A stretch of 54,965 nt of DNA from Lenisia limosa. Its lineage: Eukaryota; Protista; Breviatea. The DNA lies in NCBI GenBank assembly GCA_001655205.1, contig LPNZ01008506.1, positions 1-54,965 on the forward strand, in the 5' to 3' direction. Below are positions 44,173-51,317 of the stretch, piece by piece (within the stretch, counting starts at the first letter, position 1; every line of letters starts with the position of its first letter). Made by a program: the position numbers and the translations under genes. The notes under the pieces were generated by a model. The model saw nothing but the letters and a program-made list of their open reading frames with translations, was not told the origin of the DNA and did no database searches.

Positions 44173-47100
44173 ATGGCAGAAACCCCGTCTTTCAAGCAGT
44201 CCCTCGCGGCTCTTAATGAGTTTGCAACAGGTGATTTTGACTTTGGAACCCCCGACAACAACCGAGTTCGCGATTCGAGCGATGTGAGCGGGATCTATCA
44301 GTCCTTTTCTTTCATAGAACATATTCTTGCCTCCTTCTATTCAGGGGTCACCCAAGAGTTTAATAACAATGATGTGTTATGAATGCAGATGATAAAAATT
44401 TATTTTCTAAGGGATAAGTTATGGCAGATCACAGACTTCATTGTGATGGCCTGTTTTTTCGTGTCCCGCATTCCTGTATATTCATCATACTTTCACGCTT
44501 GAAAAAATATCATTGATTTTACACACACAAACGGTGGAATATTTGAGATGACATTTGACTGTTCAATTGCACTCACCCTCAAGGATGAGTCACTTGTCGG
44601 TTACGGCGACGGTTNNNNNNNNNNNNNNNNNNNNNNNNNNNNNNNNNNNNNNNNNNNNNNNNNNNNNNNNNNNNNNNNNNNNCGTTGCTGTATTGGTATT
44701 TTTTTGGATGTTTATTTTCTGATAACACTAGATCTGAAACTTGCGTCAAAAGGCGCTTTCAGTGTCTTTGAAGATAACGACGTAACCGTCAATGTAACAT
44801 CTGTCATCAATAGCGGGCAGCTTAACCAGTAAGAGGATAATTATCAGACACTTCTCGGTATTTACATCCTTCTGTGCTATATTGGCGCATTATTGCTGAA
44901 CTCCATAACTGCCACCAGGTTTAAACAGTTTGAGAAGAAGTCTCCAGTCTCAAATGAAAATGTAGGATCCCATACCTTTCATATACTCTATCCCGGTTTT
45001 TATCAATTTGCTCACCTGACAGATTCTCACCAACCAACAACTGACGGTCCACCCCCCACACCCGAATCTAACTTCACAAAACTTCACGACACACTCAGTG
45101 GACGAGTCATTATCCATTGATATTACCGGGGTGATATCGGGGACCCCAGGCACCCATGGACTCTCGGCCACGTTGGACTCACCGGTCGGTCAAAACAGCG
45201 GAAGGGACACAACAAGTGCTTCCGAAGTAGACCTGAAGGAGTTCCAGAACACACTTCCCTCATTTGGAAACGCTAGTGTGAGTAGAATCTTCCAGAAGCC
45301 CGTCACAATTGATGAAGACGTCACATTCCCTACCTCGGAACCATCAGACACGGGAACCGAGCCATCGGCTGCCAAGTTCAATGTTTTTGCCGAAGACACC
45401 ACCGATACTTTCCGACGGACTGGAAATTTCGCCCAGGTTCGTGCTGTTCGTTAAAACAAGTCCCCCCGCTTTATTACTGAATTCTTCCTGTTTAACCCCT
45501 TAGGATCGAACAGCGGAGTCCTCTCAGGCGCCTCAGACTCTCTCCGAACCATCGTCTTCTTTCCCTGTTTTCTCCGATTCTCCAATTCAATCGTCACAAC
45601 CATCATCCCAACACAGCTCGCAGCCTTCATCATCACAGCCATTCCAGATGTTTGAAGATGACAATGTGACANNNNNNNNNNNNNNNNNNNNNNNNNNNNN
45701 NNNNNNNNNNNNNNNNNNNNNNNNNNNNNNNNNNNNNNNNNNNNNNNNNNNNNNNNNNNNNNNNNNNNNNNNNNNNNNNNNNNNNNNNNNNNNNNNNNNN
45801 NNNNNNNNNNNNNNNNNNNNNNNNNNNNNNNNNNNCCACAACCATCATCCCAACACAGCTTGCAGCCTTCATCATCACAGCCATTCCAGATGTTTGAAGA
45901 TAACAATGTGACAATTAATATTCCTGTTGTTCCCTCCTCTGGTGGTCTGAAAGTACACAGTAGTCCTGCTCCGAAGTCAAACGCTCTGATGTTCACTGAT
46001 GAGGATATTACCCTCAATTTCCCCATGAAGAAGCCCCCAAAGCCCAATCAAAAACCACCACAGAATCCAATTTCCCAGCCTTCCTCTTTCCCTGTTTTCT
46101 CCGATTCTCCAACTCAATCGTCACAACCATCATCCCAGCACAGCTCGCAGCCTTCATCATCACAGCCATTCCAGATGTTTGAAGATGACAATGTGACAGT
46201 TAATATTCCTGTTGTTCCCTCCTCTGGTGGTCTGAAAGTACACAGTAGTCCTGCTCCGAAGTCAAACGCTCTGATGTTCACTGATGAAGATATCACTCTC
46301 AATTTCCCCATGAAGTCACAGGTTTCGCCAGCCTCTGCAGAACAGGTCCCTACGTCCACAATGTTTACCGAGCTCCCAGCCAGTGCCAGCAGTCCCTTCA
46401 GCTACAACGGTACGGCCACGTCATCAAACGATCAGACCAAAACGGAGAACATGTGGGCAGAAGAAGCCATGAAACTCTCATCTGAGCATACCGCGTTGAA
46501 ACCCGAGGCCGGCCCGGAGCCGACTGAGAATACTGCGCCTATTGACCCCATGGAGCTGACAGGAAAGTCGCCACAAACGCCAGTGGCCACGTCATCGCTG
46601 TTTGTCATGGAAGACTCGCCGTTCATCGCAAAGAAGTCACTGAAAAGGTCCCCGCCTAAGTCGGTCTTGCCACAAAACCAGCCTGAGCCCCAAATTAAAC
46701 AGCCGACATTCGAGCCAGCCCCCTTTTCCGGTGAGTCTCCTGATGCTAACTCCCACTCCCCCCTGGAGCCGCAGACGCTGTTCACGGCCCCCGTGACGGC
46801 CAACTTGAAACGACCCTCCCCAGCGCCAGTCTCACAACCCGGCCCAACCCAGCCAAGTCCCCCCGCGTCTCCTTCACCCGTGCCGCCTCATGTCCAAGAA
46901 CATCAGAAGGAAATCCCCCTCAGTCACCCCCAGAGCGGACAGGTTCAGCGCAGTCCAGTTCAGGTCTTACAGAATGTAACTACTGCGACAAAGTCGCCCA
47001 TTCGTCTTCTCCCAGCAATGAGCCCCTTCCGCACGTTGCCGCAACCCGCAATGCCGAGCCCTGGCATCTTCGCCCAGACCGGACCTGTCAACAGATCGCC

Positions 47101-50100
47101 TGTTCAAAGCCCCATAGTCAACTTGACAAGCACGTCGTCCCTCTGGGCTGCCGACACCACTCTGCACGTGACTGATGTGGCTATTGAACAGGAGGCTTCG
47201 CTTTTGGTCTCAGAACCCACTGCCACTCTTGCCCGCATCCCAGTCCCAACTGAGGAACCATCTGAGACTCCTGTAGATATCCCATCCCAGTCATTTTCCG
47301 CACCGCCAACACCCACTCCGGCCGAGGCACCCCTCACACCATCCCCCGAAACACTGCAGGGTCCCAGCACGCCGAAGCCTGAAGAATCCCCACTAGCTCC
47401 ATCCCCCGTCGCAGTCAAGTCCTTCGCCGTTGCCGAGTCACCTCTTCCAAACATGTCACGCCGACGCGCGGAACTCATGTCGCCTAGCTCTCCGCACTCC
47501 TCTATTGTCCGCACGTCTCAGTCAATGTCTCCTTTTGCGGCCACGGCACAGTCTTCGAAACAGTCGCCGGAGATTAAGCAGGAGCGACTGTCCGCGTCGG
47601 TCACTTTGTCGCCCCAAGCCATCGCGAATGATAATGAGGTAGGATATGGGAGGAAAATAACAAATGTATGCATGCTGTACATACCAGCATCTCTTTTCAG
47701 TGACACTTTCATTTCCCTCGCATATTATTGGATATGATCAACCTGACTAATGCGCCAGGCTGACGACAGTGTTATCATCATTGAGCCAGAAAGTCCAAGC
47801 AATCCCGAAATTGAACCAGGTTGGTAGGACCTTTTGTTGCATCATTAACTCTAGAACGCACCCCTGAACCCTTGGACTCGCCGCCTGCTTCTCCCACGAG
47901 CGAACCAGAAGAAAGCAATCAAAGCAATCACGACTCGCCACCTCAGGAGCCAGTCCAGCCCCCCTCAGGTCTCCCGGTGCCCACTCTCAGCAAGCCTCTT
48001 AGCAATGACATGGCAGATGACATGGCACAGACCCCCCAGGCCCGTGCGCCTATACAGCCGTCTCCCGTGCCGACGGTTAACACCAGTGCGCTCAGCCCCA
48101 CGCCGTTCACCCCGAGACGGCCAGTCTCTCTCATGTCTGCCCGGACAAGGGGCACGCCCTTCACGCCTGCTCGCACGCCATTTTCACGCAACACCCCGTT
48201 CACACCCCGCTCCACTTACACAGGTTGGAACGTCAACATTTTCATTTCATTTCTTTTTTTAGCTTTTTTCAGCCATAATTTTTCTCACCTGTCTAGGTCG
48301 AATCCCGTTCACCCCGGGTACCTCATATTCGACCATGACTCCGCCGCCGGATATGTCCATTCCTTGCGTCATTAAACAGCTTGAAATTGACACCGTGCAC
48401 CCCCAGGTTAATGACGCGTAGGCGGTTTGAAACCTGCCACTTTCATCATCAACAACACGTGCATTTGTTCAGGGTTACCCCCCTCCCCCAGACCTGAGCC
48501 TTTCAACGAAAGTGACAGTTTCTTGGTCCAAGCTCTTCTGGTGGCTCCCAACACACGTTACACTCTTGAAATGTGCAAACGCATGGTGGGCTGTTGTTTC
48601 TTTTTTTTAAAGGATCATAACAAATATTCGACTGAAATGGATGCTGTCAGTTAGCATCTTTCACTCCCAAAGGAGATGTATCTTCAGAAGCACTCCGGCC
48701 AAACGGCTGAGATTGAGAACGCGATCAACGAAGACTTTCCAGCGTCTCTTGCTTACAGGCTGTCTTCATGTGAGGGGGGGGGGGGTTCATAGGACTACTA
48801 TTAAGATACTACATGCGTTTTGTTGCTCATAGATAATCCTCTGGTCTGGAACAGTTCGAATGTGAGTGACCACACCGTAGTGTCTTCTGAAGAGTTGGAG
48901 GAAATGAAGGACTCCGCCGATCGACTGTGGACGGAATTCAGAGCAAACGTAAGGGGATAATTCGAAACTAATTGGGTGAGATCACGGTGTGAATTTTCGC
49001 AGTTCGAAATAATTTTCCATTACATAGGCTTTCCAAAATTGAGACGGAATGGCAGGTTTTCAAGAAGCATCTTTTGATTAGGAAAATTGAACATTTAGGC
49101 AAACCAAATCTGGTGCCGTTACCGTAGCAAAGAGGAAGAAAAGCTGCTGGAAGTCTTGAATCGAGTCAACACCAGGATTACAAGGGTGGGTCAAGCTGCA
49201 AGGAAATATTATATCTCTTACTTAAGTGTATATAATCATTTCAATTACTGTACATCGACTATCTCTCCAATAGGAACTCACGACGTTCACGAAGCCCTTC
49301 TCAGATTGACTCTTTAGGATACCATGGTGTTAGNNNNNNNNNNNNNNNNNNNNNNNNNNNNNNNNNNNNNNNNNNNNNNNNNNNNNNNNNNNNNNNNNNN
49401 NNNNNNNNNNNNNNNNNNNNNNNNNNNNNNNNNNNNNNNNNNNNNNNNNNNNNNNNNNNNNNNTTCAGGTGTAGTGATGGTGACTAACGTTTTAGTTTGG
49501 ACAGTAGGTTCCAAGGGCTACTGAAGGAAGGAGACGGTCTTGCTGCTCAGAAGTCTCAGGCCACGATGCGGCTGCAGAAGGCAAAGAAAGACATCGCAAG
49601 ACTGAACGTTGGAGGACAATATCGAGAAAGTAATACTGTCTTTTTTTTCTTTTTGCTTTGCGCTCCTTGTTCCACGATACGAATAGCATAAGGGTTCTTA
49701 CCAAGAGGAATTACCGGAGAAATGACTCTTGATTCTGTAAATATGTTAGGCTGAGGCTGAGACGCTTCGAGTTGAGCTTCGAAGCACTGAGCAGAAGATG
49801 CGGAGTATTGAGAGAGAAAACACGGCCCTCAACTCTCGACAGGCTGTTTTGGATACTGAGAAAGGTGTCGGTGACAAGCACTCGGTATGCCCCTGCAAGT
49901 TATCAAACACACTTCATGAACACTGTGATAATATGATAAATAGGCTTGAGTAATTGTGTTTTTGCTTCAATTATACTACATTTTGGTCATTCAATTGGCA
50001 GACTAAAAAGACTTCACAAATAATAACATAATATTTAATAAATACATGGACTCTCTTCTTCAAACCAGTGGCTCACCTTTGCAGTTTGAGTCGGACCGAT

Positions 50101-51156
50101 ATGGTGTTGTGACGTCTTTGGCAGAGTACAAGACTATCATCATCACACCTTTGGTTGGTTCACATAAATGTTCATTCGGTCCAACAATTGTTTTGTGCAT
50201 GTCTTTAATCACACAAGGAAACGAGAGTATCGTTCTTGGAGGGAGCCTTTGAGTTTTCAGCGCGGTACAGCACAGCATCAGTCAACGATGGTTGGAATTG
50301 TCTTTACAAGAGGCAAATCATTATTGAGCATTTTTCTGTTTCTTTGACATCCTGCTTATTCATCATCAAACTCCTTAAGCTATGACCTTTTACCTTATCA
50401 TTAACCACCATACAGACGGGTCAAGACCGGTGGACTTCTGTTCGTTTGTGCCGTCAGCACTGCTCGGCAAAGCATCCTTCCTCACTGCTGCCGTCCACCA
50501 CGCCGACCTCAACCGCCTGTGCTGCAGAGTCGTGTCGTCGAAAATGGTCCCTCTGGTAGGGCTTTCCTCCTGGCTATTGACTCTCTAGGTCCTGTCCCAA
50601 ATTGGCCTTGTCATCAGCCGCCTAACCGAAGCCTTCAAGGACCTCTGCGCTGTTGACACTCAGGTTTCTTCGGCTGTGGAGGACGACGGTACCCCCATTT
50701 TCACTGTGGAAGTCAAGCCCACACCGGGGTTGATATATCATGGTAGGGCCAAACTGATTTTGTGTCACCTCTCTATGATACGGTCCCAGCTTCAATATAG
50801 ACATTTACAGTAAATTGTTCCATCTTATTGAGTAGCGTCCTTTGTTTTGGACTGGAACTATCCGTTCCAGCCGCTCGAGCTTCGGACCATTACGGCGGTG
50901 TCCGGCGGCGTGGATAACGAGGCGGTGAAGGAGGTGCGTCCAAGGTTTACATTCTGAGTGCAAAGGAATATCGAAACTTGTGAGAATTTATCAAGAATTC
51001 AGGCTTTTTAAGAATTGAATTCAAGTTTATATGGTTCAAGTACCGTATTCTAAACACGTTATGTTGACATCTCAGGCGATTCTTGATACCAAGCCCGGGC
51101 CGGACCTCATAAATCGAACTATTCGGGCCATGTGCTCCACTTCAACTCATCTCTAG
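44173..51156 (+). CDS. KNL1: Divergent KNL1/Spc105 (CASC5)-like outer kinetochore scaffold protein
   Basis: Architecture: long S/P/T-rich disordered region with repeats and a literal MELT (46550-46561), then LLVAPNTRYTLEMCKRML, a coiled coil (ETLRVELRSTEQKMRSIERENTAL) and a C-terminus resembling the KNL1 tandem RWD (RVSFLEGAFEF; VPLVLSQIGLVISRL; FVLDWNYPFQPLELRTITAVSGGVDNEAVKEAILDTKPGPDLINRTIRAMC). Stop TAG at 51154-51156. Three N-gaps. Confidence 0.75.
45545..46315 (+). repeat. Coding tandem repeat, 285-bp (95-aa) unit, at least 3 copies, within the KNL1-like gene
   Basis: The MFEDDNVT/MFEDNNVT codons start at 45648, 45890 and 46175; the last two are exactly 285 bp apart. The copies are nearly identical at the nucleotide level. 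An N-gap (45672-45835) lies inside the array. Confidence 0.92.
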
Positions 51157-51317
51157 GTTGGTGTTGTTTGTAACCCCGGAATCCATTTGATTTTTTTAGA
51201 GAAGACCCCTCCCCCCTGTTATTTTACTTTGTACTTTAGCGTTTCTTGTTAGTATCTATGTACTCTATTTCACTGTCTACAACTTATCACGAATTTCATC
51301 AAAATAGTGACGGCGGT

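Follow-up and report, generated by a model that had tools for sequence, protein, structure and literature searches.

A candidate divergent KNL1/Spc105 kinetochore scaffold gene, assembled from 21 exons, in the breviate Lenisia limosa

Contig LPNZ01008506.1 of Lenisia limosa (assembly GCA_001655205.1), 54,965 nucleotides (nt) long and hereafter termed the window, carries at positions 44173-51156 of its forward strand a real, spliced gene with a KNL1-like order of parts: a disordered region rich in repeats, a helical block, a coiled coil, and a C-terminal α/β region. As modelled, this is a single multi-exon gene, with 21 exons encoding at least 1,566 amino acids (aa), a count that includes the minimum lengths hidden in two assembly gaps, gap 2 contributing 69 aa and gap 3 a further 28 aa. 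The gene, its splicing, its repeats, its composition, and the order of its parts are all established below. On the basis of layout, we consider the gene to be a divergent KNL1/Spc105 orthologue of the breviate, with a probability of roughly 0.65. Membership in the KNL1 family is not demonstrated: profile comparisons, pairwise alignment, and the search for PP1-docking motifs each came back negative.

Transcription and splicing of the gene

RNA evidence came from a polyA metatranscriptome run of 2016 (X1) and DNA contigs from a second run of the same study (X2), with contigs from both being placed on positions 45230-51200 of the window. The surrounding DNA is intron-rich and eukaryotic in character. 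Eleven canonical GT..AG splice junctions were borne out by polyA-RNA contigs, ten of them in coding sequence and one in the 3' untranslated region (UTR). The coding joints, all on the forward strand, are 45436/45504, 48769/48881, 48948/49099, 49607/49750, 49884/50085, 50153/50218, 50290/50416, 50555/50589, 50742/50836, and 50933/51076. Among these, 50555/50589 removes an intron of 33 nt (50556-50588), which is very short yet canonical. Once joined, the RNA-supported exons remain in frame through to a TAG stop codon at 51154-51156.

A preliminary description of this DNA, made from its letters alone, had spliced together a gene of about 20 exons with a four-part layout (disordered repeats, a MELT motif, a coiled coil, and a C-terminal domain). 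Both proposals hold: the present model has 21 exons, with 11 RNA-confirmed joints, the four parts are found in it, and the stretches 45230-46152 and 48675-51200 are transcribed. The peptides quoted at that time (VSFLEGAF, PL/VLSQIGLV, LDWNYPFQPL, and SGGVDNEAVKE/AILDTKPGPDLINRTI) are likewise all present in the RNA-supported product.

The confirmed junction beyond the coding sequence belongs to a 43-nt GT..AG intron in the 3' UTR (51157-51199, forward strand), which begins at the very base after the TAG stop; it was recognised from an RNA contig with a loose end at 51156 that resumes with the letters of 51200 onward.

RNA contig coverage is limited to 45230-46152 and 48675-51200. The lack of any X1 contig over 46230-48630 counts against a junction between the repeats and the C-terminal part, and the link between the two thus rests on a 601-codon open frame together with in-frame splice models. 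Two adjacent genes might therefore have been read as one, with a Ser/Pro-rich repeat protein ending at approximately 47638-48400 and a separate coiled-coil protein encoded downstream. Such an arrangement would agree not only with the missing RNA, but also with the need for one non-AG mini-intron of 23 nt and a second, ambiguous splice in the same span. Against it, 601 codons lie open up to a good splice donor at 47638, excision of all five subsequent introns would preserve the frame and uncover no stop, and the sequence ahead of 48675 shows no fresh start in the form of an in-frame ATG preceded by a stop. We judge the two-gene arrangement to be quite improbable and treat 44173-51156 as one gene in what follows.

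The gene escapes tools based on open reading frames (ORFs) and on profiles, owing to its 20 introns (some are as short as 23-35 nt, and one is probably TG-ending), its three assembly gaps, and its very divergent C-terminus.

The disordered N-terminal region and its motif array

Residues 1 to ~1,140 consist of 42-65% Ser, Thr, Pro, Gln, Gly, and Asn, with Pro at 8-25%, followed by a sharp drop; as judged by this composition measure, the N-terminal ~1,140 aa are disordered. Embedded in this region is a repeat array (45555-46315, forward strand), interrupted by gap 2, in which a unit of 285 nt (95 aa) is present in at least three copies. These copies are 96-97% identical at the DNA level (187/194 and 114/117 identities), and the repeat is recently amplified. 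Every 95-aa unit bears the motifs FPVFSD, FQMFEDDNVT, and LMFTDEDIT; related motifs are found in exons 2-5 (44732-45671), i.e., FSVFEDNDVT, SIDIT, IDEDVT, and FNVFAED.

Two motif families can be recognised. The first is a set of acidic Thr motifs (FEDNDVT, SIDIT, IDEDVT, FEDDNVT, and FTDEDIT) that are far more frequent than chance, with the pattern [DE][DEN][ILVM]T occurring five times (0.41 expected) and F.[DE][DE].{0,2}[VI]T four times (0.02 expected). An exact Met-Glu-Leu-Thr is encoded once, at 46550-46561 on the forward strand, in the context PIDPMELTGK; the corresponding pattern M[ED][ILVM][ST] has this one occurrence against 0.15 expected (P=0.15 by shuffling). The second family conforms to F-x-[ILMV]-[FHY]-x-[DE], the ABBA-type consensus for Cdc20 binding, which is found seven times (0.08 expected) between residues 29 and 446 (window positions 44745-46200), in the four contexts FSVFED, FNVFAE, FPVFSD, and FQMFED. 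This is the less ordinary aspect of the protein, as its repeat module appears, at the level of motifs, to match the ABBA-type consensus and not the classical unit of T-x-x-aromatic, MELT, and SHT.

Further along, TPF[TS][PR] occurs five times within ~45 aa (0.03 expected) at approximately 48100-48320, accompanied by several S/T-P-x-R sites of the cyclin-dependent kinase (CDK) type. This cluster immediately precedes the structured C-terminal part.

Helical block, coiled coil, and C-terminal region

By composition, the product of 48430-49185 forms a charge-rich helical block low in Pro, which precedes the coiled coil. It is encoded on the forward strand by exons 48430-48585, 48655-48769, 48881-48948, and 49099-49185, with the second and third of their joints being among those confirmed by RNA. 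RNA shows intron sequence at 49030-49098 and at 48833, which rules out an exon guessed for the former and an exon start guessed for the latter. A supposed likeness of this block to the conserved WYEWR-type stretch of Spc7 found no supporting text and no Pfam or PDB match, and carries no weight.

The next two exons (49496-49607 and 49750-49884, forward strand; joints RNA-confirmed) are charged and free of Pro. A heptad-type segment at model residues 1293-1340 falls within them, and a coiled coil thus precedes the C-terminal domain by a crude, heuristic heptad score.

The C-terminal α/β region that follows spans ~206 aa, displays an alternating hydrophobic pattern, and contains the sequence NYPFQPL. 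Its first half, of 94 aa, is encoded by exons 50085-50153, 50218-50290, and 50416-50555, and its second, of 110 aa, by exons 50589-50742, 50836-50933, and 51076-51156 (including the stop), all on the forward strand and with joints confirmed by RNA. The region is of the right size for two RWD domains, not one; the first half (50085-50555) is a candidate RWD-N and the second (50589-51156) a candidate RWD-C. A weak likeness between the two halves is seen in a V-x-D-D-G-x-P-[VI] hairpin (P about 0.1). In the last 110 aa, a helix is followed by strands, NYPFQPL, and further helices.

Structure models, which cover single unspliced exons, are in keeping with such an arrangement for the second half. 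For exon 50589-50741 alone, AlphaFold gave a helix (residues 2-20) and a β-hairpin (strands 22-30 and 36-44) at a predicted local distance difference test (pLDDT) score of 78.5, with the next exon supplying a strand and then the Y-P-x-x-P-L loop (NYPFQPL), an order also seen in UBC-like and RWD domains. The 46-aa exon 50418-50555 yielded one helix at low confidence (pLDDT 55). In a language-model atlas, 68 of the 100 nearest neighbours of exon 50589-50741 were UQ_con proteins, with UFC1 and E2-CBASS among the others, at a score of 0.87 that serves as a lead only; two further exons gave uninformative results in the same atlas. RWD is a member of the UBC-like superfamily, as are proteins of the UQ_con type. 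No HPN-Cys follows the YP motif in the sequence, and the domain is thus not a catalytic E2.

Were the C-terminal region neither UBC-like nor RWD, the product would be an unrelated disordered coiled-coil protein, with its KNL1 likeness coincidental. We hold this to be highly improbable, given that a helix, three strands, and Y-P-x-x-P-L constitute a specific signature, and that the 68 atlas neighbours come from one superfamily.

Tests of KNL1 identity

Several results weigh against the assignment of the gene to KNL1/Spc105. With respect to profiles, Pfam searches of ten exon or ORF pieces at E values up to 10 detected no Spc7 (PF08317), Knl1_RWD_C (PF18210), RWD, or UQ_con domain, and spliced pieces of 59, 52, 90 (the helical block), and 110 aa (the last domain) returned none of Spc7, Knl1_RWD_C, RWD, UEV, or UQ_con. 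With respect to sequences of solved structures, phmmer searches with five exons and with spliced pieces recovered no KNL1, Spc105, or RWD protein from the PDB sequences, a set that includes full-length human KNL1 (8ppr_K) as well as 4nf9/4nfa. Fold searches with a fragment as small as 51 aa gave noise only. All spliced queries were of at most 110 aa.

Pairwise alignment gave the same outcome. A 60-aa peptide of the human KNL1 C-terminus (residues 2278-2337) was verified as bait by its exact match to 4nfa, 4nf9, and 8ppr_K. Aligned to the Lenisia protein by the Smith-Waterman method, it reached a score of 34, where shuffled sequences averaged 33 (z=0.2); its best match fell outside the C-terminus, and the last 120 aa gave z=-0.47.

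Relatives were equally elusive. Searches of a protein library with the 601-aa exon and the 110-aa last domain recovered no homologue and not even the gene itself, indicating that the proteins of this genome are not in that library. JGI metagenome loci held no relatives either, and no profile could be built in consequence. An exhaustive search of representatives with the 51-aa exon returned one bacterial repeat protein (P0001), which was judged spurious and left the gene with no true relatives in that search. Pfam found nothing on five neighbouring ORFs.

At the level of motifs, the Met of MELT is absent from most of the acidic Thr sites. PP1-docking motifs of the SILK type ([SG]IL[KR]) do not occur in the modelled protein, and no RVxF motif is present at its N-terminus, the sole RVSF lying inside the C-terminal domain; for both motifs, the 5' exon model on which the search relies is uncertain.

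These results bear on the preliminary description. It had held that the C-terminus follows the residue pattern of the KNL1 RWD, which neither Pfam nor PDB searches bore out; the human 60-mer aligned no better than to shuffled sequence, and the motif match is thus not above chance in pairwise comparison. HMMER-type comparison with Spc7 and Knl1_RWD_C was silent for exons and spliced pieces alike. The identification as KNL1 survives in part, in that the layout fits KNL1/Spc105 best, but no test of sequence or fold confirmed it.

The same negative results speak for a rival reading, in which a coiled-coil scaffold ends in a UBC-like or RWD-type domain without being a KNL1 orthologue. It might be a different kinetochore or checkpoint protein with an RWD, or an adaptor peculiar to the lineage that happens to have a long disordered phospho-motif region. 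The absence of PP1-docking motifs would suit such a protein, and the UBC-like lean of the C-terminal domain fails to separate KNL1 from other RWD, UEV, and E2-like proteins. Nonetheless, the other coiled-coil and RWD proteins Mad1, Csm1, Spc24/25, CENP-O/P, and Kre28 are not known to have disordered acidic-Thr arrays of ~1,100 aa with an exact MELT, the part ahead of their RWD being either short or helical throughout, and the size of the C-terminal region of the Lenisia protein fits two RWDs instead of one. We thus regard a non-orthologous scaffold as unlikely, though deserving of more weight than the other alternatives, and know of no family besides KNL1/Spc105 that fits this layout.

A KNL1 identity is also compatible with the failed searches. 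KNL1 is present in all eukaryotic supergroups, many of its accepted protist members required custom profiles for their detection, and rapid, lineage-specific turnover of its repeats is the published norm (PMC4558858). Given this distribution, divergence, and turnover, neither a KNL1 at this locus nor the failure of standard profiles to find it is surprising. The earlier characterisation of the protein as a "strongly remodelled KNL1" is overstated for the same reason (PMC4558858).

Proposed function of the protein

With regard to fold, partners, and function, we infer the following scheme for a KNL1 orthologue. The C-terminal ~206 aa would fold into tandem RWD domains, by which the protein attaches to the Mis12 complex, and the helical and coiled-coil block would have a protein akin to Zwint/Kre28 as its partner. 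Acidic Thr motifs of the form F-x-[DE]-[DE]-(N)-[VI]-T, along with one true MELT, would be displayed by the N-terminal two thirds, which are disordered. Phosphorylation of these Thr motifs by an Mps1-type kinase would then lead to the recruitment of Bub3-Bub1 for the spindle checkpoint.

If the protein is indeed KNL1, its docking array may have been rebuilt around a non-classical module, in which F-x-[VM]-F-x-[DE], with its ABBA-type fit, is coupled to an acidic Thr site. Such a scaffold could recruit Cdc20 or another WD40 partner directly, and not via Bub3-Bub1 alone. This proposal derives from motif matches, and we consider it a long shot.

Exon models and assembly gaps

The 5' exon model is uncertain. 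Exon 1 (44173-44230, forward strand) was read from the sequence with an ATG at 44173 and an apparent donor, CAG/GTGATT, in phase with 44732; for an alternative donor at 44283, no in-phase AG acceptor was found. Gap 1 (44615-44682) lies inside the modelled intron 1 (44231-44731) and may conceal an exon. Exons 2-5 (44732-44828, 44919-44961, 45023-45436, and 45504-45671 up to the gap, forward strand) encode the first portion of the disordered N-terminal part; the last of their joints has RNA support, with the others being canonical, in-frame GT..AG by sequence.

In the model, exon 5 runs on the forward strand from 45504 across gap 2 (45672-45835), within the 285-nt repeat array, to 47638. The large portion past the gap (45836-47638, forward strand) contains the 601 codons open in one frame, is rich in Ser, Pro, Thr, and Gln, and is closed by the donor at 47638. 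Gap 2 is not bridged by X2 DNA contigs. From the register of the repeat on either side, the missing stretch should measure 207+285n bases, which is divisible by three, and both flanks are thus compatible with one frame.

Three single-letter differences separate the window from the X2 DNA contigs (46121, 46199, and 49273). Two of the three fall in the 285-nt repeat, with another repeat copy as their probable source.

Splicing of the next exons (47759-47819, 47855-48223, and 48297-48406, forward strand), outside RNA coverage, was modelled from the reading frame. The intron after 47819 would be either 35 nt with GT..AG ends (47820-47854) or 20 nt with GT..TTG ends, both choices being in frame. 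A candidate non-AG tiny intron of 23 nt (48407-48429, forward strand; GT...TTTG), also outside RNA coverage, was proposed from frame analysis because it is the sole splice found to keep the frame from 48297-48406 into 48430-48585. A 66-nt GT..AG intron at 48407-48472 was rejected, since the peptide it yields is implausible and the frame of the exons downstream could not be regained.

Gap 3 (49334-49463) comprises 130 N in the assembly and is bridged by a DNA contig, X2 record 9, in which 168 real letters stand at that place. Across it runs an RNA contig (X1 record 4) of 386 nt, of which 301 were placed, leaving ~85 unplaced between 49185/6 and 49496. A direct join over the gap would be TG..AG, out of frame, and would run into a stop. 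The gap probably conceals a coding exon of ~86 nt (~28 aa), between 49185 and 49496, that restores the downstream frame; this exon was deduced from the lengths and placements of contigs and not from their letters.

Significance and comparison with known systems

Breviates branch beside the lineage leading to animals and fungi, and a KNL1 orthologue in such a relative of animals and fungi is expected. Kinetochore surveys have noted poor sequence data for breviates (PMC10630089); if the assignment is true, a full-length KNL1 candidate would fill the breviate cell in comparative kinetochore tables, and would add one more case of rapid, lineage-specific turnover of checkpoint-docking repeats. As the last eukaryotic common ancestor is already inferred to have had a KNL1 (PMC4558858), a breviate KNL1 would leave the overall picture unchanged.

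Three groups of known proteins invite comparison. With E2 and UEV proteins (UQ_con; the UEV of Tsg101/Vps23), the Lenisia product shares the largely UQ_con neighbourhood of fragments around exon 50589-50741 and a YPFQPL that resembles the E2 YPFxPP loop. In contrast to these, its domain has neither HPN nor a catalytic Cys, comes to its end ~45 aa past the YP loop, and leaves the Pfam UQ_con and UEV profiles silent. With Mad1, Csm1, Spc24/Spc25, CENP-O/CENP-P, and Kre28, it shares a coiled coil leading straight into a small, putatively UBC-like α/β domain at the extreme C-terminus; these proteins differ in that they are not known to have a disordered motif array of ~1,100 aa, and most carry a single RWD, whereas the globular part of the Lenisia protein is about twice that size.

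The remaining comparison is with KNL1/Spc105/Spc7 (CASC5, Blinkin), the outer-kinetochore scaffold of the KMN network. The Lenisia protein differs from it in having no detectable similarity to Pfam Spc7/Knl1_RWD_C or to the PDB sequences of human KNL1, in repeats that mostly do without the Met of MELT and that carry F-x-[VM]-F-x-[DE] in place of clear T-x-x-aromatic and SHT elements, and in an N-terminus at which the SILK/RVSF PP1 site was not found. What the two have in common is the order and sizes of their parts, including a C-terminal α/β region of ~200 aa. The published layout of KNL1 is that of a disordered, repeat-bearing region followed by a coiled coil and a C-terminal domain, with arrays in which the repeat units are homogenised (PMC4558858). 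The Lenisia protein likewise possesses, together with one exact MELT, a fast-evolving array of acidic Thr motifs in units homogenised to 96-97% identity, as in KNL1 arrays (PMC4558858).

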